From positions 25,113 through 89,112 of the forward strand of contig MCFE01000349.1 of the NCBI GenBank assembly GCA_002104905.1: a stretch of 64,000 nt of DNA. The letters run 5' to 3'. The position numbers were made by a program, and so were the translations under genes. The notes below the pieces were generated by a model. It was not told where the DNA came from, made no database searches, and saw only the letters and a list, made by a program, of their open reading frames with translations. Origin of the DNA: Basidiobolus meristosporus CBS 931.73. Taxonomy: Eukaryota > Fungi > Basidiobolomycota. Of this stretch, positions 1 through 64,000 are shown in pieces (the first letter of the stretch is position 1; the number at the start of each line of letters is the position of its first letter).

Positions 1-1007
1 TGTATATAATGCTTGGAACATGTCCAGATATCTCATATTCAGTGGGAGTTGTCAGCCAACAAAATCAGAACTATAGATCTGATCATATTGCAGCAGTTAA
101 GCGGATTTTCAGATACCTAAAAGGAACTGCTGATATTTGCTAAAGATACACTTATAAGGACTCAGAACAAGATCTTGTGGGATACTCTGATGCAGATTGG
201 GGACGAAATTTAGAAGACAGAAGATCCACAACAGGATACACCTTTCTTTACTGTAAAGGAGCAATTTCATGGAATTCAAGAAAGCAACCAACCGTAGCAC
301 TTTCCACCACAGAGGCAGAGTATATGGCAGCCTGTGAAGCTACAAAAGAAGCAATGTGGTTAAGAAAGCTGTTTACAGATTTAGGCCTATGTCAAAAAAC
401 GCCTATTACTTTATTTCAAGATAATCAAGGATGTATACAATTAGGTAGAAATCCAACTTTTCATGCTAGAACCAAGCACATAGATATTAGGCATCATTTC
501 ATATGTGAAGCTATAGAGAATAACTTAGTTAGCTTAGTTTACTGTCCTACAGATGAAATGATTGCAGACATATTTACCAAACCATTAGCTAGAGACAAGT
601 TTAAATTTCTTAGATCAAAATTAGGACTAGTCAGTATGAGCATTTAGCTAAGTGGGAATATTGTAAAAATTTGTATTTCCACCTAAATATTCACCTAACT
701 TAGTCACTTAGATCATTACCTTCAAATCCTAGAGAATACTGACCAAATTCCTTGTTGGGATTTACTTAGAATATTTTCACCAAAATACCTGATACCCAGA
801 ACATGAAAATTCTCAAAGTTGTCCAAACAGCCCCAAACTTTGCACACATGTTCTTGGGACCTTCCTTAACCTATTCTACGTGCTTGTTATGCCAAGACCA
901 TGTAAAAGTATAAATACTACTTTTACAATCAATAAATCATTAAGTGAAAACCACATAATCTACTTGTTCTCCAAATCACTTCCAATATCTCCAAGACTCT
1001 TACAACA
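1..1007 (+). mobile_element. Ty1/Copia retrotransposon A, 3' part (end of RT, RNase H, PPT, 3' LTR)
   Basis: ORF 177-647 has Copia RNase H motifs ([38 protein letters not shown]). Purine tract AAGTGGGAA at 650-658 is followed by a 349-bp LTR at 659-1007 (TATTGTAAAAA...TCTTACAACA). Confidence 0.95.
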
Positions 1008-1013
1008 CATTAA

Positions 1014-1363
1014 TGTTGTAAAAATTTGTATTTCCACCTAAATATTCACCTAACTTAGTCACTTAGATCATCACCTTCAATTCATAGAGAATACTGACCA
1101 AAACTCCTTGTTGGGATTTACTTAGAATATTCTCACCAAAACACCAGGTACCCAGAACATCAAAATTCTCAAAGTTGTCCAAAAAGCCCCAAACTTTGCA
1201 CACATGGTCTTGGGACCTTCCTCAATCTATTCTACGTGTTTGTTGTGCCAAGACCAGGTAAAAATATAAATGCTACTTTTACATTCAATAAATCATCAAG
1301 TGAAAAACTCACAATCTACTTGTCCTCCCAATCACTTCCAATATCTCCAAGACTCTTACAACA
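1014..1363 (+). mobile_element. Solo Copia LTR with 5-bp TSD ATTAA
   Basis: TGTTG...CAACA termini, 350 bp, same family as 659-1007. ATTAA at 1009-1013 and 1364-1368. Confidence 0.93.
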
Positions 1364-1368
1364 ATTAA

Positions 1369-1658
1369 TTCCAAGCTGCTGGTATTATAACGGTCTCCTG
1401 ACAGCTGATGCAGATTGCATCCACTTGTGGGACCAAGTTATTTTCATAGGGTATAGGATTTGGAATAGTAATAAACTGTGGCACTTTCACCAGAGAGGCA
1501 GAGTATATAGCAGCCTGTAAGGCTGAAAATGAAGCAATGTGATGAAGAAAGCTTTTTAAGACTTGGGATTATCTCATAAAGCCCATACTCTGTTATTTCA
1601 AGATAAACAAGGATGGGCACACTTGGATTAAAATTTGATTTTTAATGATAGAACTAAG
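1369..1658 (+). pseudogene. Degenerate RNase H fragment of older Copia copy B (continues at 6337)
   Basis: Decayed DAD and VALS..EAEY.AAC-like codons. The sequence stops at GATAGAACTAAG (RTK) and resumes at 6337 with CTAAGCACATATAC (KHI). Confidence 0.8.
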
Positions 1659-4600
1659 TGATGTAAGAGCTTGGAGATATTGGAAGCAATTGGGAGGACA
1701 AGTAGATTATCTGGTTTTCACTTGATGAATTATTGAATGCAAATGTAGTATTTATACTTTTACATGGCCTTGGCATTAGAAATGCATAGAATAGGGTAAG
1801 GAAGGTCCCAAGAACATGTGTGCAAAGTTTGGGGCTGTTTGGACAAATTTGAGAGTTTTCATGTTCTAGGTACCTGGTATTTTGGTGAAAATATTTTAAG
1901 TAAATCCCAACAAGGAATTTGGTCAGTATTCTCTAGGATTTGAAGGTAATGATCTAAGTGACTAAGTTAGGTGAATATTTAGGTGGAAATACAAATTTTT
2001 ACAATATTCCCACTTAACTAAATGCTCATACTGACTAGTCCTAATTTTGATCTAAGAAATTTAAACTTGTCTCCAGCTAATGGTTTGGTAAGTATGTCTG
2101 CAATCATTGCATCTGAAGGACAGTAAACTAAGCTGACTAAGTTATTCTCTATAGCTTTACATATGAAATGATTTCTAATATCTATGTGCTTAGTTCAAGC
2201 ATAAAAAGTTGGATTTCTACCTAATTGTATACATCCTTGATTATCCTGAAATAAAGTACAGGTGTTATTTGACATAGGCCTAAATCTGTAAACAGCCTTC
2301 TTAACCACATTGCTTCTTTTGTAGCCTCACAGGCTGCCATATACTCTGCCTCTGTGGTAGAAAGTGCTATGGTTGGTTGCTCTCTTGAATTCCATGAAAT
2401 TGCTCCTTGACAGTCATGAAAAGTTGAACCTGTGGTGGATCTTCTGTCTTCCAAATTTCATCCCCAATCAGAATCAGAGTATCCCAAAAGATCCTGTTCT
2501 GAATCCTTATCAGTGTATCTTAAGCAGATATCAGCAGTTCCTTTTAGGTATCTAAAAATTGCTTAACTGCTGCCGTATGATCAAATCTATAGCTCTGATT
2601 TTGTTGGCTGACAACTCCCACTGAATATGAGATATCTGGACGTGTTCCAAGCCTGATACACATTAGACTGCCAAACATATATTTATAAGGAAAGTCAGGG
2701 CTTTCAGATGGCACCAAGCTCTCTTGATTTGGTTGAGTTTTGACCAAGTTAAGATTTGTCTCCATTGAGGTAGATGCTGGTTCATAGTCTTCCAATTTGT
2801 ACTTCTTTAGTATATCTTGAATATACTTGGATTGGCTTAGGGTAATAGTCTGGGTACTTCTGTCTATAGAGAACTTAATCCATAAGTAGTAACTGAGTTC
2901 TCCTATATTGGACATCTGAACTTCTTACATAGGCTGGATTTAGTCTCTTCCAATGTTTCTACGTTATTGGTGGCTATAGTAAGATCATCCACATATAGAG
3001 CTAATAGAACTGGACTTGCTCTATCTGGCTTATAGTATATACTATAGTCAGCATTACTCCTTTTGAGACTCAAAGATTCCAAATAAGAATCTATCTTGCA
3101 ATCCCAGGCTCTTGGTGATTGTTTAAGACCATATAGTGACTTTTTAAACTTGCAGACCAAATGGGGGCTATCTTGGTCAGCAAACCCATCAGGCTGGTCC
3201 ATATATATGTCCTCACCAAGTTCTTCATTCAAGAATGCAGCTTTTACATCCAGTTGATGATTAAAGAACTTATATTTGGCTGCAATAGTCAATATTAATC
3301 TGACAGATTAAACTTGGCTACTGGTGCAAAGGTCTCAGTATAGTCAAGTCCTTTTGTTTGAGGGTATTCTTTGGCCACAAGTATTGCTTGGTATCTTTCA
3401 ATTGTACCATCAGCCTTGTATTTTATCTTGAAGACCCATCTGCATCCAATTGGTTTTTTGTTGATTGGTAATTTCACTAAGTCCCAAGTTCAATTTTCCA
3501 TCAGGGCCTGATATTCATCAGTCATTGCAGATCTCCAAAACTTTGTCTGAGGGCTATTTAAGGCCTCTTTTACAGTCCGTGGTTCATTGATATGGACTGA
3601 ATAGGCATAGGCTAAGTTTTTACCCTCATTGATATAGTAATTGGGGCTATTTCTTGTCTGGTTGGATCTCTAGGCATTTGATACTGGAATGATCACTCCT
3701 GGGATATTCCTGGGCACTGATTTGGGCTGAACCATGGTTTTAGAGTCTTCTGGAGTGAAAAAGTTCTCATTGTTTTGCTCTGATTCAATTCTGACAATTG
3801 GTGGACTTGAGATCAGATTCTCATCATCATCTGTTGTCATTTTTTGTGAAAATCTGGAATCTTCATCAAAGAACACAGCCCTGGACTTGATTAGCTTCTT
3901 TGCTTTGGTATTACAGATTCTGTATGCTTTACTCTCATTGCAGTAACCAAAAAATATGCATTTTACACTCTTTGGCTCAAGTTTTGGCTGATTTCCAGGC
4001 AGTTTCTTGGCATATGCTGTATACCCAAGTATTCTTAGATGTTCTGCACTTGGTCTGTACCCATACCATGCTTCAAATGGAGTGGAATCATGAAGTATTC
4101 TGTTATAACTCCTATTTTTGAGGTATACAGCAGTGGCAACTGATTCTACCCAAAAATCATAAGATAATTTTCAATCATGGATCATAGATCTTATCATATC
4201 AGTTATTGATCTGTTAGCATGTTCTGCTACTTCATTTTGCTGTGAGGAGTATGGTACAATAGTCTCTTGCTTTATCCCATGAATTTTGCAGAAGTGGATG
4301 AAGAGTGTTGAGTTTTATTCTCCACCATTGTCAGAGCGTATTTGCTTGATTTTCTCACCAGTTTCTCTCTCCACCATGGCTCTGAACTCCCTGAACTTAG
4401 ACAGAGCTTCTTCCTTTCTCTCCATGAATTAACCTACGTGTTTCTTGTATAATCATCAATAAAAGTGACTAAACACTTTATCCTGCCTAAGGATAAATTT
4501 TGCATAGGTCCACACAGATCTGAGTGAATTAGATCTAATTTTTTTGTAGTTTTGATTAACCCAGAGCTCTTGAACAACTGTCTGGCTTATTTCCCATTTA

Positions 4601-6336
4601 TGCAGGCTTCACAGTGCTCCAAATTATCTGGAGGTCAGCTTTTACTCCAGAAATTAGAGGATATTTGATCATTTTCTGCAAAAAATCAAAATTGATGTGT
4701 CCAAATCTTCAGTGCCAAAGCATTGGTGTTTTGTCATTCAAGTTACTCATATTGGCTTCCAAATATGATAGAATATAAGTCAGCTTGTATAGATACTGAT
4801 CTCTGATACCAGAAGCAATATGGGCGCCATTTTGATCAGTGATCCTGCATCCAGAATTGTCAAAGTTGAAATTGAGTCCTTCTCCAGTGGCCTTGCTTAC
4901 AGATAGTAGATTCTTGGCTATTTCTGGTACATAGAGTACTTCTTTAAAAGTCAGTGTATGGCTTCCTTCAATGCTTCCAAGGTTTACTTGGATAGCCCCT
5001 TCTCCCACTGCATCAAGTGTTCTGTTGTCACCAATGAAAACCTTCTTAATTGGAATTTCTTGATATTGGGTAAAATGTACTTTTTAGTGTGTAAAGTGTT
5101 GAGATGCTCCAGAGTCAGTATACCACATCTGAGAATCCTTGCTTGTGGTTATATTTAGTGCTGATATGAATAGTCCATCTTCAGTTGTTGCAGCATTTCC
5201 ATATTCAGGCTTCTTTTGCTGATTATCTTTCTTTTTGAGACACCGGTCTGATGTGTGTCCTTTCCTTTTGCAGTAGTTGCAAAACAGGTTGCTGTTGCCT
5301 TTGTAGGGTCTTGGGTACCTCCTTTGTTGGTTATCATTGCTTATTAAAGCATTTTCTTCTTCCTTCTTATTGGCACTTGATTTTCTTAATTCTTCATCCA
5401 GGAGCCTTCCATATATGTAAATTAAGGTCAAATCTGCAGTTCTGGACTCTAGGGCAGATACAAGGCCCTGAAACTTGTCTGTCAGGCTATTTAGGATGGT
5501 AACTATCACATCCTCATCAGTAGTTGGTACACCCTCAGATTCCATTTCATCCACCAGCAGGTTAGTTCTGTTAATTAGATTTTTCATTTCTTCTCCTGGC
5601 TGCTTCTTTGTAGTAAAGAATTTTTGTCACAGATACATTTTCTTAGTAGCTGAACATGACAGGTAGGTGTCTTCTAATGCCTTCCAGGCATTCTTTGCTG
5701 TTTTTGCTCTTGAGCATTGAATTGGCAGTTTGTGTTTAACATCAAGGCAAATGCAGTTAAAGACACTTTGTTCTTTTTTCTGGTACTTTGAGGCTTCCTC
5801 TCCCACAGTTTTAGGAGGGCATTTTTTTCCCATGACAATATCCCAAAGGCCTCTTTCTTGTAGCACCATCTTCATCTTTACCTTTCACACTTGGTAGTTA
5901 GATCCATCCAACTTTTCAGCAGAGAGAAAAATTTCAGTAATAGGAGTAGTAGACATTGTAGAGAGTGACAGCATGGGGCTCATAACCTGTTGTAAGAGTC
6001 TTGGGGATATTGGAAGTCATTGGGAGGACAAGTAGATTATGTGGCTTTTACTTAATGATTTATTGAATGTAAAAGTAGCATTTATACTTTTACATGGCCT
6101 TGGCATTGCAAAAGCATAGAGTAGATTAAGAAAGGTCCAAAGAACATGTGTGCAAAGTTTGGGGCTGTTTGGACAACTTTGAGAATTTTCATGTTCTGGG
6201 TACCTGGTATTTTGGTCAAAATATTCTAAATAAATCCCAACAAGGAATTTGGTCAGTATTCTCTAGGATTTGAAGGTAATGATCTAAGTGACTAAGCTAT
6301 ATGAATATTTAGGTAAAAAAACAAATTTTTACAACA
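1659..6336 (-). mobile_element. Full-length but decayed Ty1/Copia element C (4678 bp) nested in copy B, TSD CTAAG
   Basis: LTRs at 1659-2006 and 5988-6336, with CTAAG at 1654-1658 and 6337-6341. gag starts near 5956 (EKLDGSNY..KMKMVL..LWDIV). Zinc knuckle CNYCKRKGHTSDRC and protease DSGAS lie in ORF 5084-5587. Integrase, RT (QLDVKAAFLN, KSLYGLKQSPRAW, YVDD) and RNase H follow in Copia order, broken by many stops and frameshifts. Confidence 0.96.
5976..5987 (-). promoter_or_regulatory. Primer-binding site GGTTATGAGCCC (internal tRNA-iMet half-molecule type)
   Basis: Directly abuts the 5' LTR on the minus strand. It matches the PBS type of Ty5/Drosophila copia, which pairs with the tRNA-iMet anticodon arm rather than its 3' CCA end. 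Confidence 0.8.
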
Positions 6337-7222
6337 CTAAGCACATATACATTGAACATCATTTCATATGGGAAGCTGTAGAGAATAACCTGGTTAGCTT
6401 GGCTCACAGTCCTATAGATGAAATGATTGCAGCCTTATTTAGCAAACCATTAGCTAGAGACAAGCTTGAGTATCTCAGAACACAGTTAGGAGTAGTCAAA
6501 ATGAGTATTTAGTCAGGTGGGGGTGTTGTAAATTTTGTTATTCCACCTAGATATTCACCTAACTTGGTCACTTAGATCCTAGTCTACAAATATTAGGGAA
6601 TTCTGGCCAAATTACTTATCAGGGTCTACTTAGAATGATCCCATCAAAATATCATGTACCCAGAGCATGAGAAACTGATTAGTTGCCCAAACAAGCCTAC
6701 ATTGTGCACACCTGCTTTGGAGACCTTTATAAATTTATTGAGCATATTTGCTTTGACCAGATCATGTAAAAGTGTAAGTACTACTTTTACACTCTATATT
6801 GCTGTAAATTCTGTAATCACACCTAAGTACTCACCTAACTTAGTTGCTTAGAGCAGTACCTACAAATCTTAGAGATTCCTGACCAAACTCCCTACAGGGA
6901 TTTACTTGTAATATTTTCACCAAATATCAGATACCCAGAATATGAAATTTCTCAAAGTTGTCCAAATAGCCCCAAACTTTGCACACATGTTTTTGGGATC
7001 TTTCAAACATATCCTACATGTTTATTTTGCCAAGACCATTTGAAATTATAAATACTACTTTTGCATTCAATATATCATTAAGTGAAAACCAAATAGTTGA
7101 CATGTTCTCCCAATTGCTTCCAGTATCTCTAAAACCCTCAAAACAACTATATCATCAAGTGAAAACCACATAATCTATTTGTTCTCCCAGTCACTTCCAA
7201 TATCTCCAAAACTCTCACAACA
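6337..7222 (+). mobile_element. 3' end of older Copia B: RNase H end, PPT and 3' LTR (6524-7222) interrupted by a solo LTR
   Basis: KHIYIEHHF...MIAALFSKPL up to 6512, G-rich PPT about 6515-6523, LTR start TGTTG at 6524, LTR end CACAACA at 7222. Confidence 0.85.
6800..7147 (+). mobile_element. Diverged solo LTR inserted inside the LTR of copy B, TSD TATAT
   Basis: LTR-like sequence TGCTGTAAA...CAAAACAAC flanked by TATAT at 6795-6799 and 7148-7152. Removing it restores the host LTR. Confidence 0.8.
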
Positions 7223-12466: not shown

Positions 12467-12486
12467 CTAGGGTTAGGGTTAGGGTT
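12467..12486. repeat. Short interstitial telomere-like tract CTAGGG(TTAGGG)2TT
   Basis: Read directly from the sequence, in an apparently non-coding region. Confidence 0.85.
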
Positions 12487-14913
12487 GGCCAGGGCATGAT
12501 TGGTTTAATAACAGGCACTACATTGATGCCAGACTCGCGTGTCGATAGTGTCGGAGTCCCACCGCGATTGGTGGGATTTGGCTGGCCGAACATTTCGATT
12601 ATCAAGCTTTTAAGATCAAGTTAGTTTGGTTTTAATGGGTTGCTGCATTTAGCAGGATTCGCTTAATAATTTAATAATCCACCGATGATTTGGCTGTCTG
12701 GCTGGAATTTCCTAATAACAACAAATCATCGGCGAATGCTGGCAAGGAAAAAAATTGAGTCATGCGTCTGGGCGTCCCAATTTGGAGTGACAATACCAAA
12801 GCGTCTGACATGGAAGTTAATAACCTCGGAGATCGACTTAATAAATGGCCGCGCCCAGGAAACCAATCACCGCCCGAAGGACTCAATGACCCAACTATTC
12901 TTTTCCATCCAACCGACCAATCGCGCCCTCCTTGTGAACCGTAACAAATAACCCTAAATCCAGTGCGGATCCGTATCTTGTGTTGCTGCGTGTTTCGCCA
13001 GATCAGGCTTGTGAAACAGCCGGATTTATTAAGTAATTTCATTTGGTTAGACACGATGTTGACTTAATAATGGCTGATGGAGCCAGAGGTGTGTAATGAG
13101 GGAGGTTTTTACGATTTGCATGGTGTTTGGCAGGGCTTCGGACGGAGGGGACGAGGCGTTGGAATAACCTAGGTGGTGCGGATTCCATAACTGTCAAGAT
13201 ATACCTAGACATCATCGATTGCCCCCAATTGGTGGAGTTCTATTTGAAACCCTGTGCATGCATCAAACCATTGCTGTGGATGTGGCGACTTGTATTATCA
13301 GGACGGTGGGTGAGAGAATGCAAAAGGGGCTCTGCGCACATAATGGATTACTGGAATTGTTGTTGCTATGGCTATGACTCGGTTCACTGTTACTATCAGC
13401 TATTATCAGCTGAAATCTAATGCACCTAGTAGATTAGGCGCTTGGACGTTACAACCGAATGCTTGTTAGTATGTTGATCATGTTATAGGAAAAGGCATTG
13501 GTAGATAAGCAAAAGTAGACATTCTGGCCTCTTTGGGTGAGTGCTAGAATTCTTTTCTATTTGTTGTGTAAATATTGCAATCGTCATCCCCAATGGCCAT
13601 TTTCAACATTGTCCTGTTATCCGACTTGCAACATTACATCACCCGCATGCTACATAGGGCATCTCTTTGTATTATTGATGCAACTGACTCACAGCGATGA
13701 GAACCACCATAAATGACGCTGCAGTGAGGTATTTCTGTGACGAATTGATTGCATTATATGAAAGAAGCGAAGATATTAAGAGTTGAGTTAGTGGAAGTAC
13801 GAGCTGTTGGAGGGAAGTTGTTTAACACCTTTGTTCTTGCGGATCATTGGGGCATTCTCTTTCCCTTGAATTAACAGGGCAGTAGAGTAGAAGCGCGTAG
13901 CCATTCATCCTCTATAGTCTTCCATTGGTCATTTACCGATATGTTACGGCTGAACTTTAAACCTATTAATGTAAATAGTTCCTGAACCACGTATACAATG
14001 TTCACCACGATGAGTCAAATTGATATTCATATAAATTTCACACTTGCAATTTGCTTACTGCGGCAAAGCATCCCCTTTCAAATACACTAAACATACTGAT
14101 CGTGCAAAAAGGTGAACTTTGTTTCTTCGAGCTCTCTGTGTATAGTCAAAACTTTTATTTGTTGTAAACGATTGATTGGTCTCCAAACTGCCCATATACT
14201 ATGATTTAACACTTGGAGATCATAGATCAAATTGAAGCAAAAGCAAGGAAAACAATTGTCAATGTATTCAGAGAACACTTCAACTAATGCTTTAACTTTC
14301 ACTTTACCTGCTGGTGCTAGAAAGTAGCAAGAATTGACTGATTGCTAACGATTTAGAGTTCTCGGAGGTGATCTTTGCCATGAATGATGAGTATAGTATA
14401 ACTATTCATGTATTTCGATAGAGTACTTGTTCTCTATGAGACTAACCAGATCACTAGTTCTTTGGAGTTATGTATATACTAGAAGCAACCATGTGGTACT
14501 AAAAATTGCACTGAGCTTCCTAGAACCTTACCCAGAATATACATGGCGATGATTTTATGAAGCCAACCCATATATTAATCTATACATGCAAGTCACACTC
14601 TGTCCAGTTGCAGTCCCACACTACACTTAACAATATTCACTTAATAGTCTGTTTAGGACCTAGTTACTTAGTATCGTATATGTGGCGCTCTCTTAGCTAT
14701 GATATCAGTTATATTCTTAGTAGTTACAAAGGATATACACCAATTCCAGGAAATGATGAATACACTGGAATTTCTCAAAATTTTCAAACCCCTTGAAAAC
14801 ACCATTGCCTTTTAGCACAACTTCTTGGGGCTTTTTTAAAAGCGCTCCTTACATTTATCAAGTACACCGAACTCGAATACTTTGCTCAATTCAATGAATC
14901 AAAAAGCGGGAAT

Positions 14914-54399: not shown

Positions 54400-54935
54400 A
54401 TCTCAATCAATCATAAGCCACTATCAACACTTACTAAGAAAGGGGTATTCTATAACTATTACTAATGTTTAACTTCGAGGTTGAATCAAAGGTACTGGGG
54501 GGACAGTAAAGTTTGCACACTGGCTTATTGATTCACTGATTTCAGATATTTTGGCATTCCTGTGGAACTTCATATTAAATACAGCAATAAAAATGCTCCT
54601 TGTGATGGGAATCTGATATTTTCTCCTTGGTTAGGGCTGATAGGGAATCTTCTGGCTTTAGAGTGCACTGGCTTAGGAGACTGTGTTGATGGAAGGGCGG
54701 TTGGCTTTGGATGAGCTTGAGGTGCTTGGGAGTAGGTTTGAGTATCAGTAGCAGGAGTTGCTGGTGGCTGATAGTGTTCAGATTGACTTGAAGAAGAGCT
54801 GATTGAGGAGTTGCAAGGTGAGGATGAAGCTGAAAGTGAAATTTGAGATTTCAACATTGAATTTTCAGCTTCAAGAAGAGAAACTCTTTGTTCTAGGTAA
54901 GAAGATTGTAAACTTTCAGAGTTAAGGTAAAGTCA
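54400..54935 (-). pseudogene. Probable relic of a LINE ORF1 N-terminus
   Basis: CpG-poor frame reading LEQRVSLLEAENSMLKSQI (coiled coil), then an S/P/Q-rich linker with TYSQA, then a frameshifted ...AKISEISESI resembling PISNIRKAL of ORF1 at 63.2 kb. Confidence 0.45.
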
Positions 54936-54941
54936 TGGAAG

Positions 54942-55082
54942 TATTGTAAAAATTTGGAATTCCACATAAATATTCACCTAACTTAGTCACTTAGATTATT
55001 ACCTTCATATCCTAGAGAATACTGACCAAATTCCTTGTCAGGATTTACTTAGAATATTTTCACCAAAATACCAGGTACCCAG
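54942..55082 (+). mobile_element. 5' part of a Copia LTR, interrupted by element D
   Basis: TATTGTAAAAATTTGG...CCAGGTACCCAG, cut off at 55082 by an oppositely oriented LTR. Confidence 0.9.
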
Positions 55083-57248
55083 TGTTGTAAGAGTCTTGGA
55101 GATATTGGAAGTGATTGGGAGAACAAGTAGATTATGTGGTTTTCACTTAATGATTTACTGAATGTAAAAGTAATATTTATACTTTTACCTGGTCTTGGCA
55201 TTACAAACACATAGAGTAGGTTAAGGAAGGTCCCAAGAGCATGTGTGCAACGTTTGTAGCTGTTTGGACATCTTTGAGAATTTTCATGTTCTGGGTACCT
55301 GGTATTTTGGTGAAAATATTCTAAGTAAATCCCGACAAGGAATTTGGTCAGTATTCTCTAGGATTTGAAGGTGATGATCTAAGTGACTAAGTTAGGTGAA
55401 TATTTAGGTGGAATTACAAATTTTTACAACACTCCCACTCAGCTAAATGTTCATACTGACTAGTCCTAATTTTGACCTAAGATATTCAAACTTGTCTCTA
55501 GCTAATGGTTTGGTAAATATGTCTGCAATCATTTCATCTGTAGGACAGTAAGCTAGGCTAACTAAGTTATTCTCTATAGCTTCACGTATGAAATGATGTC
55601 TAATATCTAAGTGCTTGGTTCTAGCATGAAAAGTTGGATTTCTACCTAATTGTATACATCCTTGATTATCTTGAAATAAAGTAATAGGCGTTTTTTGACA
55701 TAGGCCTAAATCTGTAAAGAGTTTTCTTAACCACATTGCTTCTTTTGTAGCTTCACAGGCTGCCATATACTCTGCCTCTGTAGTAGAAAGTGCTATGGTT
55801 GGTTGCTTTCTTGAATTCCATGAAATTGCTCCTTTACAGTAAAGAAAGGTGTATCCTGTGGTGGATCTTCTGTCTTCCAAATTTTGTCCCCAATCAGCAT
55901 CAGAGTATCCCACAAGATCCTGTTCTGAATCCTTATAAGTGTATCTAAAGCAGATATCAGCAGTTCCTTTTAGGTATCTAAAAATCTGCTTAAATGCTGC
56001 AATATGATCAGATCCATAGTTCTGATTATGTTAGCTGACAACTCCCACTGAATATGAGATATCTGGACGTGTTCCAAGCATGATATACATCAGACTGCCG
56101 ACCTTAGATTGATAAGGAAAGTCAGGGCTTTCAGATGGCACCAAGCTCTCTTGATTTGGTTGAGTTTTGACCAAGTTAAGGTTTGTCTCCATTGGGGTAG
56201 CTGCCAGTTTACAGTCTTCCATTTGGTACTTCTTTAGTATATCTTGAATATACTTGGATTGGCTTAGGGTAAGAGTCTGGGTACTTTTGTCTATGGAGAA
56301 CTTAATCCCCAAGTAGTAACTAAGTTCTCCTAAATCAGACATCTTGAACTCCTTAGATAGGCTGGATTTAGTTTCTTCCAATGTTTCTAGGTTATTGGCG
56401 GCTATAATAAGATCATCCACATATAGAGCTTATAGAACTGAATTTGCTCTATCTGGCTTATAGTATATACTATAGTCAGCATTACTTTTTTTGAAACTCA
56501 AGGATTCCAAATAAGAATCTATCTTGCAATTCCAGGCTCTTGGTGATTGTTTGAGACCATATAGTGACTTTTTAAGCTTGCAGACCAAATGGGGGTTATC
56601 TTGGTCAACAAACCCATCAGGCTGGTCCATATACATGTCCTCATCAAGTTCTCCATTCAAAAATGCAGTTTTTACATCCATTTGATGAATAAAAAACTTA
56701 TATTTGGCTGCAATAGCCAATATTAATCTGATGGAATTAAACTTGGCTCCCGGTGCAAAGGTCTCAGTATAGTCAAGTCCTTTTGTTTGAGAGTATCCAT
56801 TGGCTACAAGTCTTGCTTTGTATCTTTCAATTGTACCATGAGCCTTGTATTTTGTCTTGAAGACCCATCTGCATCCAATTGATTTTTGGTTGATTGGTAA
56901 TTTGACCAAGTCCCAAGTTTGATTTTCCATCAGTGCCTGATATTCCTCAGTCATTGCAGATCTCCAAAACTTTGTCTGAGGGCTATTTAGGGCCTCTTTT
57001 ACAGTCTGGGGTTCATCAATATGGACTGAATAGGCATAGGCTCAGTTTGTACCCTCATTGATATAGTAATTTGGGCTATTTCTTGTTTGATTTGATCTCC
57101 GGGCATTTGATACTGGAATGATCACTTCTGGGATATTCCTGGGCACTAATTCTGGCTGAACCATGGTTGTAGAGTCCTCTGGAGTGAAAAAATTTTCATT
57201 GTTTTGCTCTGATTCAATCCTGACAATTGGTGGACTTGAGATCAAATT

Positions 57249-57597
57249 TGTTGTAAAAATTTGTATTTCCACCTAAATATTGACCTAACTTAGTCACTTA
57301 GATCATCACCTTCAAATCCTAGAGAATATTGACCAAATTCCTTGTTGGGATTTACTTAGAATATTTTCACCAAAATACCAGGTACCCAGAACATGAAAAT
57401 TCTCAAAGATGTCCAAACAGCCTCAAACTTTGCACACATGTTCTTGGGACCTTCCTTAACCTATTCTACGTGTTTGTAATGCCAAGACCAGGTAAAAGTA
57501 TAAATACTACTTTTACATTCAATAAATCATCAAGTGAAAACCACATAATCTACTTGTTCTCCCCATCATTTCCAATATCTCCAAGACTCTTGCAACA
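57249..57597 (+). mobile_element. Solo LTR in antisense inside element D, TSD AAATT
   Basis: TGTTG...CAACA, with AAATT at 57244-57248 and 57598-57602. Confidence 0.93.
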
Positions 57598-58849
57598 AAA
57601 TTTTTATCATCATCTGATGTCATTTTTATGAGAATTTTGAATTTTCATCAAACAACACATCCCTGCACTTGATAAGCTTCTTTGCTTTGGTATTGTAGAG
57701 TCTGTATGCCTTACTCTCATTGCAGTAGTCCAAAAATATGCATTTTAAACTTTTTGGCTCAAATTTTGACTGATATCCGGGCAGTTTTTTGGCATATGCT
57801 GTACACCCAAATATTCTTAGATGTTCTGCACTTGGTCTGTATCCATACCATGCTTCAAATGGAGTAGAATCACAAAGTATTCTGTTATAACTCCTATTTT
57901 TAAGATATACAGCAGTGGCAACTGATTCCTCCCAAAAATCATAGGATAATTTTTGATCATGGATCATAGATCTTGCCATATCAATTATTGATCTGTTAGC
58001 TTGTTCTGCTACTCCATTTTGCTGTGGGGAGTATGGTGCAGTAGTCTCTTGCTTTATCCCATGAATTTTGCAGAAGTGGATGAAGAGTTTTGAGGTATAT
58101 TCTCCACCATTGTCAGAGTGTATTTTCTTGATTTTTTCACCAGTTTCTCTCTCTACCATGGCTTTAAACTCCCTGAACTTAGACAGAGCTTCTTCCTTTC
58201 TCTCCATAAAGTAGACCCATGTGTATCTTGTATAATCATCAATAAAAGTGATTAAATACTTGATCCTGCCTAAGGATAAATTTTGCATAGGTCCACACAG
58301 ATCTGAGTGAATTAGATCAAATTTTTCTTAGTTTTGATTAACCCAGAGCTCTTGAACGGTTGTCTGGCTTGTTTCCCATATATGCAGGCTTCACAGTGCT
58401 CCAGATTAGCTGGGGGATCAATTTTCACTCCAGAAATTAGCTGATCTTTGATCATTTTGCGCAAATAATCAAAATTGATGTGCCCAAATCTCCTGTGCCA
58501 AAGCATTGGTGTTTCTTCATTTAAGTTACTTATATTGGCTTCCAGATATGATGGAATATAAGTCAACTTATATAGATTCTGATCTCTGATGCCCGAAGCA
58601 ATATGAGCACCATTTGGATCAGTGATCCTGCGTCCAGAATTGTCAAAACTGAAACTGAGTCCTTCTGCTGTGGCCTTGCTTACAGAGAGTAGGTTCTTGG
58701 CTATTTCTGGTACATAGAGTACTTCTTTAAAGGTCAGTGTATGGCTTCCCTCACTGCTTCTAAGGTTTACTTGGATGGTTCCTTCTCCCACTGCATCAAG
58801 TGTTCTATTGTCACCCATGAAAACCTTCTTAATTGGAATTTCTTGATAT

Positions 58850-59198
58850 TGTTGAAAAAATTCGTAATTCCACCTAAATATTCACCTAACTTAGTCACTT
58901 ACATCATCACCTTCAAATCCTAGAGAATACTGACCAAATTCCTTGTTGGGATTTACTTAGAATATTTTCACCAAAATACCAGGTACCCAGAACATGAAAA
59001 TTCTCAAAGATGTCCAAACAGCCACAAACTTTGCACACATGTTCTTGGGACCTTCCTTAACCTACTCTATGTGTTTGTAATGCCAAGACCAGGTAAAAGT
59101 ATAAATACTACTTTTACATTCAGTAAATCATTAAGTGAAAACCACATAATCTACTTGTTCTCCAAATCACTTCCAATATCTCCAAGACTCTTACAACA
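58850..59198 (+). mobile_element. Solo LTR in antisense inside element D, TSD GATAT
   Basis: TGTTG...CAACA, with GATAT at 58845-58849 and 59199-59203. Confidence 0.93.
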
Positions 59199-59447
59199 GA
59201 TATTGGGTAAAAAGTTCTTTTTGGTGTGTAAAGTGTTGAGAAGCTCCAGAGTCAATATACCACGTCTGAGAATCCTTGTTTGTGGTCATATTTAGTGCAG
59301 ATATGAATAGTCTATCTTCAGTTGTTGCAGCATTTCCATATTCAGGCTTCTTTTGCTGATAATCTCTCTTTTTGAGACACCGGTCTGATGTGTGTCCTTT
59401 CCTTTTGCAGTAGTTGCAAAATAGGTTGCTGTTGCCTTTGTAGGGTC

Positions 59448-59979
59448 TTAGGGGGAGGAAAGTCACCAAGTGGTGAAATCTTTATTTACTTATGACAAGT
59501 ATCTAAAGAAGCCAAGTTAATCTGAAGTTATTCCTAGAAAGCTAGGTCTGAGAGATATCTTCCTGGTAAGCCAGGTCTGAGAGTTGAGAAGCTGAGTGGT
59601 ACTATATTTCCTAGTTAGCTAGGTCTGAGAGAGGTTTCCTGGAAAGCCAGGCCTGAGAAGTGAGAATCTGAATATATCTGAGCTAAGTTATACTGGTTTG
59701 CGGTAGCTGAATTGTGGCCGGAATGGCCAGTAGACTGGGGGAACTGAGATGAATTTCTGGGCGATCACTGGCCAAATTTACTAGGCAAATCTGGCCAATT
59801 AGCATTTCAAGGATTTCAGCCAATCAGAGCCTTTACTTTGCCCAATGGTTGATCAAGCCATCTCCCAATGAGCACACATCAATTTATTAATCAAATTTTG
59901 TTGGATCCAGGATTTAAACCCACAACCATGGGTATGGAAGGGTTAGGGATAACCACAAGGCTAAGTGTTCTTGGTTGGG
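59448..59979 (-). mobile_element. tRNA-headed SINE-like unit, copy 1 (about 530 bp)
   Basis: Minus strand has an A-box TAGCCTTGTGG (59963-59953) and a B-box GGTTTAAATCC (59920-59910) at tRNA spacing. No ORF. The 3' end is shared with the adjacent LINE, and a second copy lies at 63304-63831. Confidence 0.75.
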
Positions 59980-60042
59980 TTAGGGGGGAGACAGTCACCA
60001 ACAGGTGAAATCTTTATTTCAGTTGAAACAAAGAAGCCAGCG

Positions 60043-62811
60043 CTACTGTTGTAGCTTTGATATAAGAGTGTGTAGCTGAGGGGAATTTGTAGGTAAGTTA
60101 ATAAGAAGTGATGATAGTTCTTCAGTGCTCAAGACACTGTTCAGTGGGAAGGGGGGTAGCAAGAGAGGTAAGAATGACTTGTGAACAACATTAATGAGGG
60201 GAATGTGATAAGGATTGATATTCATCATAAAGGGAGTGTGCTGCTGCAGATATTGCTGCCAAAGGTCTGTCAAGTACTTCAGGTAGGCCAGTTTGGGTTT
60301 TTCTGACTGCAGAATATAGTGAGCAAACTTCTTGACTTCAGGATCTCCAAGTATAGTTCTCCAGCAGGAGTCAGGTGTAGTGTGGTGTGTTCTCTTCCAG
60401 GCCTTAATCAGTGGGTTGTTGCAGTTGTGAAGTCTGAGGTATAATCTGGTTCTAAGGTAGAGAAGTCTGATCTTATAGGGCATAAACCCAAAAGCACCAA
60501 GAATAGCATGTCTGTAGGGGCATTCAGGCAAATGAGGCACCAAGGAGGTAATGCACTATACTGCAAACTTGTCAAGCTTAGTGCAGTCTCTAGAAGTAAG
60601 AGAGAGAAGTGGTAAGCCAAATTCCAGGACAGGGAAGACAAACTGCTTGAGTAGAAGGAGGCAGCTGGGAGCTGAAGTTGTAGGAGGAGTAACAGCCAGT
60701 AGCTTGTGGAGTGCCTGTCTTGCCAGGATAATTCTCTTCTTCAGGTGTGCTCCAGAGTCTAGTCCAGTAGGAAGGAAAGGAAAGCCAAGATATGTAGCAG
60801 AAACCTGAGCAGGTAGAGTGGAGTTCTCCAAGTTGATGGGAGAGCCCAAAGGTACTGTCTTTGCAATGGAAAGCTGGAGATTATTCTTCTGCAGATACTG
60901 GTGGATGGTCTGGGAGTCTTGTTGCACATTGGAGGAGGATAATCTGATGTCATCAGCAAAGAGAGTAACCAGGCAGTCAGCTGAGAGTCTTGGGAAATCA
61001 TTCAGAAAGATGGCAAACAGTATAGGACCAAGCACAGAGCCTTGAACCACTCCATTAGGAACTGAGAACACAGCTGATTGCTCACTTGAGTGCAGAATGC
61101 TTGCTTGTGGATCCAGAAACAGAGACCTGACAAGGAGGGTGAGAGAGGTACTGGAGAAGCATTGCAACTTGGACCAAAGCAGATTTCTGTCAACTGAATC
61201 AAAGGCCTTAGTAATATCAAACAGAACTGAGGGATACTTGCACTGGAGAGAGTGATCTTGGCTAAGTATGACTGCATATTCCAAGGAGAGGCCAGGAACA
61301 AAGCCAAACTGTGCAGGATGAAACTTGAGGGAGTCAGAGTAGAGCTCCTGAGCAAGCAGAAGCTCAAACACCTTTCTGCAGGTAGGCAGCAGAGATATTG
61401 GCCTGTAGGAGCTAGGATCCAGGTGCTTTCCTTTACCCTTGTACAGTGGCAGAACATTTGCAAAGGACCATTCCTCAGGAGTAGAAAGCTGGGCTGAGCA
61501 TTGCTGAAACAGTGGAAGCAGAAGTGCAGACATGGCCTTGGTACTAGTCTTCAGAAGCTCATAAGAGATTGTGTCCACACCTGGAGCAGTAGAGTTGGGA
61601 AGCCTCTTGAGCACATTATGGATTCTCCTTTGATCAAGTGCAAGTGGGATGGGCAGAGTCTTGAAGTCAGGATGAAAGCCAGGAGTTGAGTACTGCTTTG
61701 TAGAGAAGAAGATGTTAGCCAGCTGTTCTGTTGAAGGTAACTTCCTGGAAGAGGGCCTCATTGCCCTGTAGAGTCTTGATACTGTTCTTGTTATAGAGTT
61801 GGAAGATTGCAGAGGCAAAGAACTCATAATATGATCCCAGAGCTGAGTATGCAGAGTGTGGTGAATTGCCTTGGAGTGGTGTATTGCTGTCAGGAGGAGT
61901 TTCTCTGTTTTTGGGTTAGGGAAGCTCAGGTAGCTTTGTTGCAGGGCTGAAACAATGGATTCCCATTTTCTTGAGGTAACAGCAGTAGTCTTGCATGGCA
62001 GTGAGAGGGAGGCAGACACCAGAATCAGATGCTTCACAAAGAGCCAGGCATAGTTGAGATCATCTGGCAGAGAAAGTAGCAAACTGGCAAGCTTCAAGTA
62101 GTTCCCAAAGTCTTTCTTCTGATTCTTGGTAGCTTTGTGGGTGAGCACAGTAAGTTTTGGCAGCTTCTTCTTCACAACTGGTTGCATAGAAAGGGACCAG
62201 GCTGGGTGGTCAGAGGCTCTCAAGGATCCTAGCTCAGCTCCAGAGAATTGCTTAACTTCATTCACAAAGTAGAGGGCAGCAGCAGAACGGCAGATCCAGT
62301 CAACACATCTTTTCTCAGATTGAGCACCTAGTGCTAGCAGGTGGCTTTCTCTCAGGAAGTTCAGTAGGAATGTAGACCTTGGCTTCATTCTTGCAGTCAG
62401 AGTAGTCTTGTTCTCAGGATGGGGAATGTTGAGATCTCCAAGCAAGATAACAGGTGTTGATATAGATTGTTGGTATTGCTGAACCTTCTGGCATATAACT
62501 TGCACTTCCTGAAGGGCAAGACTTGGAGGCAGATAGCAGAGCACCAGACTGATAGTTGGCAACTGGAGAGCAGCACAGTAAGGGGAGTAAAGAGGAACAC
62601 AGAGCTGAGGAGTATTGATGGTAGAAGAGATGAAGCAGATAGAGGAGGTATTCTTTGTTCTAGGAGTAGAAAAGCAATACAGATTAGTCAAAAGTATAGA
62701 GGGTAGCTGGACATCAATCAAACACAGGAGGGAAAATCTTGATAGAAGTCTCTCTAGAGTTGGTCTTGATGGCTGTATGCTGTTGCAGTTAAGCAACAGA
62801 ACTTCAGGTAG
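60043..62811 (-). CDS. LINE ORF2 (APE endonuclease + reverse transcriptase + C-terminal region), one in-frame TAG at 60556-60558
   Basis: APE: LLLNCN, CYLPP, ILLGDLN, CVDW, SDH. RT: APGVDTI, YRPISLLPTCRKVFE, QFGF, FDITKAFDSVDR, GVVQGSVLGPILF, LFADD, YLG. The 166-aa ORF 60043-60543 is in the same frame after the TAG. Confidence 0.93.
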
Positions 62812-63279
62812 TCAGGCAGAGGTTGTAGCTTCTTCAGAGGCAGCATTGACAATGTGACCTGCAGAGTCCCAGAGCTCTTCAAATGGTGCATCACTTAAGT
62901 CAGCAAGGAGGGAAATGGCATGATTCTTGAGGAAGTATGCCACATCATAGGAGGGGGCTTGTCTCTTGATGACAGCAAAGAAAGACAGAATGGCAACATG
63001 GGCTGGAGGCTTGTTGAACAGTAGAGAGTCAGAGGATTCAGATTCTTCAGGCACTATCTTGAAGTCAGTTTTCAGCCAGTTAAGGTTCTTCTCCACAAAG
63101 GCAACAAATGGGTCAGCAATGTTTTGGTCTAGGATAACCTCCAGAATCTTCCCTTTTCTCCAGGCCAGGTTGACAATTCTTGAGAGCTGAATATTGCATG
63201 CCTTGAGTGCTTTCCTGATGTTGGAAATGGGAGTCCAGGGAACTTGCTTCAAGTACACCACAGTCCAGGTAGAAGCTGG
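62812..63279 (-). CDS. LINE ORF1, C-terminal part only
   Basis: The frame is open from 63279 (PASTWTVVYLKQVPWTPISNIRKAL...KILEVIL) with no ATG, directly preceded by telomere-like repeats. The TGA at 62812-62814 is in frame with ORF2. Confidence 0.75.
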   Translation of the reverse strand, partial: PASTWTVVYLKQVPWTPISNIRKALKACNIQLSRIVNLAWRKGKILEVILDQNIADPFVAFVEKNLNWLKTDFKIVPEESESSDSLLFNKPPAHVAILSFFAVIKRQAPSYDVAYFLKNHAISLLADLSDAPFEELWDSAGHIVNAASEEATTSA

Positions 63280-63309
63280 TTAGGAATAGGGTTAGGGTTA
63301 GGGTTAGGG
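63280..63309 (+). repeat. Telomeric repeats at the LINE 5' truncation: TTAGGA ATAGGG (TTAGGG)3
   Basis: Read directly; the last TTAGGG is also the terminus of SINE copy 2. Confidence 0.92.
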
Positions 63310-63831
63310 GGGAGGAAAGTCACCAAGTGGTGAAATCTTTATTTACTTATGACAAGTATCTAAAGAAGCCAAGTTAATCTGAAGTAATTCCTAGAAAGCT
63401 AGGTCTGAGAGATATCTTCCTGGTAAGCCAGGTCTGAGAGTTGAGAAGCTGAGTGGTACTATATTTCCTAGTTAGCTAGGTCTGAGAGAGGTTTCCTGGA
63501 AAGCCAGGCCTGAGAAGTGAGAATCTGAGTATATCTGAGGTGAGTTGTACTGATTTGCGGTAGCTTGTTTGTGGCCAGAATGGCCAGTAGACTGGGGGAA
63601 CTGAGGGGTATTTCTGGGCGATCACTGGCCAAATTTACTAGGCAAATTTGACCAATTAGCATTTCAAGGATTTCAGCCAATCAGAGCCTTTACTTTGCCC
63701 AATGGTTGATCAAGCCATCTCCCAATGAGCACACATCAATTTATTGATCAAATTTTGTTGGATCCAGGATTTGAACCCACAACCATGGGTATGGAAGGGT
63801 TAGGGATAACCACAAGGCTAAGTGTTCTTGG
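63304..63831 (-). mobile_element. tRNA-headed SINE-like unit, copy 2
   Basis: About 97% identical to 59448-59979 by eye. A-box 63820-63810, B-box GGTTCAAATCC 63777-63767. Confidence 0.8.
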
Positions 63832-63911
63832 TTAGGGGGAGGGAAAGTCACCAAGTTGGTGAAATCTTTATTTGAGGGTTAGGGGGAGGAAAGTCACCAA
63901 GTGGTGAAATC
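63832..63911 (-). repeat. Two very short copies (47 and 33 bp) of the shared 3' terminus
   Basis: TTAGGGGGAG(G)GAAAGTCACCAAGT(T)GGTGAAATC starts again at 63832 and 63879. Confidence 0.9.
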
Positions 63912-64000
63912 TTAGGGGGAGGAAAGTCACCAAGTGATGAAATCTTTATTTACTTATGACAAGTATCTAAAGAAGCCAAGTTAATCTGAAGTTATTCCTA
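63912..64000 (-). mobile_element. 3' end of a third SINE-like copy, running off the window
   Basis: Matches 59448-59536 nearly base for base. Confidence 0.85.

Follow-up and report, generated by a model that had tools for sequence, protein, structure and literature searches.

A probable telomere-specific LINE/SINE array in the fungus Basidiobolus meristosporus

The array and its elements

The stretch of DNA analysed here, 64,000 nucleotides of a contig of the fungus Basidiobolus meristosporus CBS 931.73 (hereafter the window), ends between positions 59448 and 64000 in six modules, all on the minus strand: a short interspersed nuclear element (SINE), a 5′-truncated long interspersed nuclear element (LINE), a second SINE, two stubs reduced to 3′ tails and a third SINE (Table 1). 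We regard this assemblage as almost certainly a telomere-specific LINE/SINE array. A first-pass annotation, made from the sequence only, had proposed this layout on the minus strand without poly(A) and without target-site duplications (TSDs), and reading of the sequence together with BLAST against the window confirms it. On the plus strand, every module starts with TTAG(5-6)AG followed by a common hairpin-forming sequence, and neither poly(A) nor TSD is found at any of the six. Two limits proposed earlier had to be adjusted: the LINE, given as 59980-63291, starts where it was placed and ends at 63279, while the first SINE, given as 59448-59979, is a genuine module which stops at 59974, the remaining five nucleotides (59975-59979) being a TTGGG spacer.

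No LINE or SINE sequence was detected by BLAST elsewhere in the 64-kb window on either strand. Position 64000 is also the end of the contig (C645), which cuts the third SINE copy. The first SINE copy is 96.8% identical to the second over SINE positions 5-528, with 8 differences from the 525-bp consensus. The telomere-type tract at 63280-63303 ranks in the top 5% by length among the 158 junctions measured, and none of 100 shuffles contained a (TTAGGG)3.

The LINE of the window displays 99.5% identity to positions 1-3301 of a full-length copy of 4,567 bp (L033:1501-6067, minus strand), and other copies run ~1.27 kb past the point at which the window copy is truncated. Its open reading frame ORF1 has 523 codons and consists of a Cys-rich N-terminus, a coiled coil and a conserved C-terminal domain. 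It ends at a UGA, in the context UGA-CUA, from which ORF2 (922 codons) continues in the same frame, followed by a 3′ untranslated region (UTR) of ~63 nt. This arrangement suggests stop-codon readthrough, which would yield an ORF1-ORF2 fusion. ORF2 of this LINE family has no AUG of its own, and the stop context is conserved in three families: UGA-CUA lies at window 62806-62817, L033:4327-4338 and L062:2109-2120, and UGA-CUC in L063 at ~2668-2680. The window LINE is truncated inside ORF1 and, owing to an in-frame stop in ORF2, is a dead copy; the stop is a private TGG to TAG change at 60556-60558, where intact copies carry TGG.

The 5′ UTR of the full element terminates in ...TTTAAAGAGG and comprises 1 to at least 3 tandem monomers of ~100 bp with an internal TTAGGGTTAGGG. 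These monomers (L033:5911-6067; L035, L045 and L054 at ~5960-6300) resemble a promoter-monomer array, in which the internal TTAGGGTTAGGG has not been used for insertion.

In profile searches, ORF2 matches the reverse transcriptase (RT) family RVT_1 with E = 2.6e-25, and Exo_endo_phos and Exo_endo_phos_2 weakly. In an alignment with four close relatives and five distant proteins combining an apurinic/apyrimidinic endonuclease (APE) domain and an RT, the APE catalytic Asn, Tyr, GD-N (GDLN), a probable VDW Asp and SDH are all kept. The AlphaFold model of ORF2 residues 1-270 (pLDDT 78) matches the endonuclease (EN) of TRAS1, APE1, ExoIII and L1 EN at E ~2e-9; TRAS1 EN ranks at the top, by a margin over the three others that is not meaningful. 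Judged by alignment and model, the LINE is predicted to encode an APE-type endonuclease N-terminal to the RT. The Mg-binding Glu of APE-type nucleases is replaced by Asp in the whole LINE family (L033 ORF2 residue ~31, LIDVQL; also in proteins P0001 and P0003). Profile and structure comparison detected no RNase H, zinc knuckle or any other domain after the RT in ORF2. The nearest solved relative of the RT is LINE-1 ORF2p (E = 6e-13), and the closest proteins outside the family, 25-32% identical, are arthropod APE+RT proteins and unnamed proteins from metagenomes; comparisons with Pfam, PDB and Atlas place ORF2 only as ‘APE+RT LINE’. The C-terminal domain of ORF1 is modelled as a ferredoxin/RRM-like beta-alpha-beta-beta-alpha fold with additional helices, for which no PDB match better than E = 0.05 was obtained.

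The SINE is non-coding, with a consensus of 525 bp (copies of 525-528 bp) in which 76 bp are duplicated internally. Over the 41 nt of its 3′ tail it shows 90% identity to the LINE; this tail forms the same hairpin and ends in CCCCCUAA, and both elements co-occur in the same arrays. A short non-coding element bearing the 3′ tail of a partner LINE is what is expected of a LINE-dependent SINE, and the element qualifies as such by its sequence. A B box, GGTTCAAATCC, is found at position 55 and an A-box-like motif, TAGCCTTGTGG, at position 12, while no T4 run occurs in the 525 nt; a head of RNA polymerase III (Pol III) type is plausible. As to the origin of this head, neither ARAGORN nor Rfam, even at E<=10, recognizes a tRNA in it, and derivation from a tRNA is unsupported by these two programs and unproven.

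The 3′ tail is the feature that array members have in common. In the RNA sense it shows a fixed order: an invariant box AAAUAAAGAUUUCACC, a variable loop, a GGUGA closing stem, a short spacer, 4-11 C and UAA (in this PacBio assembly, the length of such G-runs or C-runs may include homopolymer error). The LINE tail is predicted to fold into two hairpins with -15.6 kcal/mol (z = -5.9). At least five families in this genome have an unchanged UCACC/GGUGA hairpin stem around loops that vary, which leaves no covariation to be scored in the stem. Every 3′ end reads ...C(4-11)TAA and is joined, without poly(A), either to repeats or to the neighbouring element. To judge from these DNA copies, RNAs of array members would end in the complement of the telomere G-strand rather than in poly(A).

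Further families are found in the same arrays. Members of ~0.96 kb (L007:2025-2990 and 2986-3524; L011, L024, L026, L035, L041, L053) contain a single ORF of at least 289 aa that encodes a coiled coil and the ORF1 C-terminal domain (29-36% identity). Sharing the 3′ tail as well, they recall HeT-A and have the look of a non-autonomous partner limited to ORF1. At least three other LINE families (L002:2-1441, L003:3-1277, L008:2-943, L033:551-1450, L040:603-1481) lie in the arrays in the same orientation, with ORF2 35-57% identical to that of the present LINE. Relatives with 48-63% ORF2 identity were also recovered from independent public samples (L061-L067; Logan ERR14042384, ERR14127404, ERR14042393, ERR14656578 and ERR14042375; ENA ERZ27274739), and display the same hairpin, then CCCCCTAACCCTAA, and head-to-tail joints. 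The tail pattern had no match in JGI metagenome contigs.

Table 1. Features at the array end of the window (window coordinates)
Feature	Positions	Strand	Remarks
Copia-type long terminal repeat (LTR) retrotransposon, end	59191-59447	-	gag zinc-knuckle ORF 59191-59469 with CNYCKRKGH; broken at 59447-59449; innermost boundary of the array
SINE copy 1, full length	59448-59974	-	3′ tail at low coordinate, Pol III-promoter-like head at high coordinate
TTGGG spacer, degenerate telomere unit	59975-59979	+	between SINE 5′ end and LINE 3′ end; direct reading
LINE, 3′ 3,301 bp of 4,567-bp element	59980-63279	-	5′-truncated inside ORF1; dead copy
LINE 3′ UTR	59980-60042	-	two hairpins, invariant AAAUAAAGAUUUCACC box, terminal C-run and UAA
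LINE ORF2 (APE endonuclease and RT, 922 codons)	60043-62811	-	in-frame TAG at 60556-60558
ORF2 APE-type endonuclease domain (predicted), ~residues 1-215	62167-62811	-	catalytic motifs and AlphaFold model
ORF2 RT core (Pfam RVT_1)	60778-61416	-	profile match
ORF1 C-terminal 155 codons and UGA stop	62812-63279	-	stop context UGA-CUA, in frame with ORF2
Interstitial telomere-type tract, 4 units	63280-63303	+	TTAGGAATAGGGTTAGGGTTAGGG; TTAGGA ATAGGG TTAGGG TTAGGG; abuts truncated LINE 5′ end
SINE copy 2, full length, 528 bp	63304-63831	-	76-bp internal duplication at 63388-63530
47-bp 3′-tail stub, third array family	63832-63878	-	hairpin loop AACUU; tail type GTCACCAAGTTGGTGA recurs in other loci
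33-bp SINE 3′-tail stub (abortive copy)	63879-63911	-	sequence reading and BLAST
SINE copy 3, 3′ 89 bp	63912-64000	-	97.7% identity to SINE positions 5-90; contig end cuts the copy

Outside the array, an interstitial CTAGGGTTAGGGTTAGGGTT in plus orientation is present at window 12467-12487, in a gene-rich region lying 47 kb inside the contig, with no element attached. A KH-domain gene of the window finds its best named match in Basidiobolus ranarum, at 70% identity, and has paralogues in B. meristosporus CBS 931.73. The gene-bearing part of the window is flanked at both ends (600-7200 and 54900-59447) by nested or tandem pieces of Copia-type LTR elements, whose LTR-like units measure 350 bp and are 75-97% identical.

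Position of the elements at chromosome ends

Sixty loci of the genome, chosen as best matches, were fetched, and the array counts given here rest on these. They contain 342 BLAST matches to the LINE or the SINE that are all co-oriented, and none that is reversed. Genome-wide, a LINE 30-mer occurs 128 times in forward and once in reverse orientation and a SINE 30-mer 275 and 13 times; for (TTAGGG)6 the count is 6728 on the plus strand against 68 on the minus. Where reverse SINE copies could be mapped, they sit at the left end of contig C479 (positions 230 and 758), whose right end has forward copies. The plus-strand excess of (TTAGGG)6 means that nearly all telomere-bearing contigs were deposited with the telomere on the right, which is odd for an assembler.

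At 15 of the 23 distinct contig ends reached, the 5′ end of the outermost element, complete or truncated, passes directly into 131-230 bp of (TTAGGG)n (21-38 units), and the other 8, the window included, stop inside the array zone. Head-to-tail arrays thus lie at the physical chromosome end with their 3′ ends inward, a placement that we infer for the contig of the window as well. Tract lengths indicate that the genome probably has a few hundred capped chromosome ends. Logan contigs of the source sample included none bridging beyond window position 64000, the repeats giving thousands of ambiguous pieces.

The genome encodes a TERT RNA-binding domain, with a match above the Pfam cut-off. The elements extend the subterminal zone and do not replace telomerase, since telomerase-type repeats still form the caps. 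The term ‘telomere-building’ used in the first-pass annotation is therefore an overstatement, telomerase still being responsible for capping. Its central proposal, an APE-type LINE with a non-autonomous partner at the TTAGGG ends of a fungus, is borne out by the predicted APE fold and RT of ORF2, the shared tail, the co-orientation and the adjacency to terminal tracts. It had asked where genomic copies lie relative to contig ends, a point on which the 15 directly capped ends bear; dispersal with ordinary TSDs and no TTAGGG junctions, named there as the opposite outcome, is contradicted by the strand bias shared with the telomere repeats, by the terminal tracts and by the lack of TSDs.

One locus departs from this general organization. 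Beyond a truncated LINE and (TTAGGG)3, L056 (positions 1501-6044, contig C733) continues with ~0.7 kb of unknown sequence and then a 155-bp satellite, which in L052 lies proximal to an array. L056 looks like a former chromosome end made internal.

How the arrays may grow

Nicking of duplex repeats by the APE endonuclease and priming by a free G-strand end yield the same polarity, so that orientation is common to both. We lean, with slightly better than even confidence, towards priming on eroded chromosome ends. According to this model, the tail hairpin would recruit the LINE RT to the LINE's own RNA and to the SINE RNA, and the terminal CCCUAA would pair with the 3′ end of a G-strand eroded to 0-1 repeats; alternatively, any exposed 3′ DNA end could serve as primer via a 0-2 nt overlap. 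The DNA end would then prime reverse transcription, so that the 3′ end of the new element faces the chromosome interior and its 5′ end the outside. The stubs of 33-47 bp would be abortive copies, and a direct switch of the RT to the next RNA may also occur. Telomerase then re-caps the extended end, a step that is itself observed, with TTAGGG tracts of 130-230 bp, and repeated rounds would build a one-way stack of elements. A precedent exists in the Penelope-like Athena/Coprina elements devoid of endonuclease, which attach to G-overhangs via reverse-complement telomere repeats (PMC8557442).

At 158 distinct 3′ junctions, extra repeat units number 0 (95 cases), 1 (44), 2 (9), 3 (5) or 4-6 (5), so that 88% have 0-1 units, and the longest remnant is 37 bp. 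Such short inner remnants favour end-priming, since an element inserted at random in a 200-bp tract would have anything from 0 to 200 bp on its inner side. Telomere motifs inside the elements are as long as the usual junction stubs, and all of them are unoccupied: 16 out of 16 (TTAGGG)2 in LINE 5′ UTRs and 57 out of 57 GGGTTAGGG in SINEs (0/73 used). The interstitial (TTAGGG)3 at window 12467 is likewise empty. Attachment to non-telomeric DNA, with 0-2 nt of overlap, is seen at the window Copia, at a Copia in L056, at the satellite in L052 and at another LINE in L003. For the window this can be read to the nucleotide: intact Copia reads GTAGGGTCTT|GGGTACC and the window copy GTAGGGTCTT|AGGGGGAGG, which leaves a 2-nt TT overlap, the new DNA starting with A. 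The 5′ end of a full-length SINE directly abuts the next tail in 29 cases, and these direct joins may reflect RT template jumping.

Several observations weigh against priming at eroded ends. The APE domain is conserved, with 45-55% identity across families and the catalytic N, Y, D, N, D and DH kept, and such conservation argues for use of the endonuclease, although Drosophila TART also keeps an APE domain. The Copia breakpoint TAGGGTCTT|GGGTA resembles two degenerate telomere repeats on either side of the cut, the pattern that would result from a repeat-specific nick of duplex DNA. No clear age gradient is visible: only ~8 of 13 arrays have their outer SINE nearer to the consensus than the inner one, and the window shows the opposite. 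SINE divergence probably reflects many source copies. The 3′ end of the RNA is deduced from DNA copies, and the contig of the window stops inside the array, with the cap outside its reach.

Some of these features would be accommodated by a TRAS/SART-like process, in which the APE endonuclease nicks the G-strand of duplex repeats (e.g. TT^AGGG), target-primed reverse transcription takes place into the tract or into stubs between elements, and strand-specific cutting fixes the orientation. The retained APE fold with near-complete catalytic residues fits this process, with TRAS1 EN as top structure and APE1, ExoIII and L1 EN scoring equally; so do the Copia breakpoint, the TTA that precedes the G-run at 141 of the 158 junctions, and the absence of a monotonic age gradient, as expected of insertion at any junction. 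We nevertheless judge it rather unlikely. Inner remnants have 0-6 units against 21-38 in terminal tracts, while random cutting would leave long remnants; the internal motifs of 1-2.3 units in 73 element copies and the interstitial sequence at 12467 have never been used; the attachment sites in L056, L003 and L052 are free of telomere-like sequence; and the poly(A) tail of TRAS/SART is absent here.

Arrays could also have been spread by recombination between ends (break-induced replication, unequal exchange or segmental duplication), end retrotransposition being rare and ancient. Similar arrays do occur at many ends, L056 resembles a former end internalised by end capture, and SINE divergence is out of step with array order. 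This is nonetheless improbable, given that truncation points and junctions are nearly all unique across loci, that both window junctions (Copia/SINE and LINE 5′) are single-copy in the assembly, that LINE copies 99% identical to one another are truncated at many different points, and that abortive stubs of 33-47 bp exist. Least of all do we credit an ordinary dispersed LINE/SINE pair that would appear at contig ends because young repeats break assemblies, with TTAGGG as a microsatellite tail. Copies are indeed young (96-100% identical) and 8 of the 23 contig ends reached stop inside elements, yet 96-99% of copies share the strand of the telomere repeats, the remaining 59 kb of the window contain no copy, 15 contig ends pass from element 5′ ends into terminal TTAGGG, and TSDs are lacking; orientation, position and TSD evidence already contradict it. 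Resumption of the Copia element beyond the array was looked for as TTAGGG within 14 nt of the Copia continuation, and only point variants of intact Copia were retrieved, a weak negative.

Known telomeric retrotransposons and significance of the Basidiobolus system

A 2023 review of telomere-associated retrotransposons lists TRAS/SART, GilM/GilT, Zepp, MoTeR1, Tx1-1_ACar and Athena, MoTeR1 being the sole fungal telomeric non-LTR element that it names (PMC10088271). Our literature searches found no paper joining Basidiobolus with telomeric retrotransposons and no description of a telomere-specific or telomere-confined SINE, and a fungal pair of the present kind, of which the first-pass annotation knew no description, also proved to be without a published description that we could find.

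TRAS1 and SART1 of Bombyx mori (R1 clade) are APE+RT LINEs which, as here, reside in telomeric repeats in one orientation alongside telomerase-type repeats, and TRAS1 EN is among the best structural matches of the Basidiobolus endonuclease. They differ in having poly(A) and in lying within long (TTAGG)n, whereas the Basidiobolus elements end in the telomere complement with 0-6 units between them and are hosted by a fungus. We know of no SINE partner of TRAS or SART.

With HeT-A, TART and TAHRE of Drosophila, the arrays share a head-to-tail arrangement at the extreme ends with 5′ ends outward and a community of autonomous and non-autonomous elements, the latter represented in Basidiobolus by the SINE and the ~1-kb ORF1-only element. 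Drosophila, in contrast, has no telomerase repeats and its elements end in oligo(A), while Basidiobolus ends are TTAGGG-capped and TERT is present. HeT-A, moreover, is a Pol II element coding for gag and not a Pol III-type SINE.

Two features link the arrays to Athena/Coprina of rotifers, fungi and others, namely an RNA 3′ end that is the reverse complement of the telomere repeat and short telomere stretches between elements (PMC8557442). Those elements have a Penelope-like RT, no endonuclease and hammerhead ribozymes, unlike the LINE-type RT and conserved APE domain found here. MoTeR1 and MoTeR2 of Pyricularia (Magnaporthe) oryzae are also fungal non-LTR elements inserted in telomeres, and they too include a non-autonomous partner. 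MoTeRs carry a restriction-like endonuclease, while that of Basidiobolus is of the N-terminal APE type with no domain detected C-terminal to the RT; MoTeR2 is an internally deleted derivative and not a SINE, and the host is an ascomycete, as opposed to the early-diverging fungus considered here.

Eel UnaL2 and UnaSINE1 offer a parallel for the SINE: UnaSINE1 combines a Pol III-type head with the 3′ stem-loop of its partner LINE and has a short terminal repeat instead of poly(A). The Basidiobolus SINE similarly shares the tail hairpin of its partner. The eel elements, however, are dispersed with TSDs, while those of Basidiobolus terminate in the telomere repeat and are restricted to chromosome ends.

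Telomere-specialised retrotransposons bear on the relation between telomerase and retroelements and on the loss of telomerase in Drosophila. In this respect, Basidiobolus provides a telomerase-positive system with very many chromosome ends in a culturable fungus, and its young, 99%-identical copies point to possible ongoing activity. Three classes of partner element use one RNA tag, the role of the APE domain is testable, and the question of end-priming versus endonuclease nicking becomes directly testable as well. Its LINE would be the first telomeric one of APE type in a fungus and its SINE, to judge from our searches, the first confined to telomeres. For genome annotation, the arrays are of practical use as markers of genuine chromosome ends where an assembly is fragmented.

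A broader proposal can be put forward tentatively, at somewhat less than even odds. Telomerase would have been kept, and yet hundreds of ends would routinely be healed and lengthened by a guild of retroelements (several families of APE LINEs, the ORF1-only element and the Pol III SINE, which would be the first telomere-specialised SINE), united by the shared hairpin and telomere C-strand tail and copied from eroded G-strand ends. If this is true, Basidiobolus would represent a living intermediate between telomeres maintained by telomerase only and the retrotransposon telomere of Drosophila.

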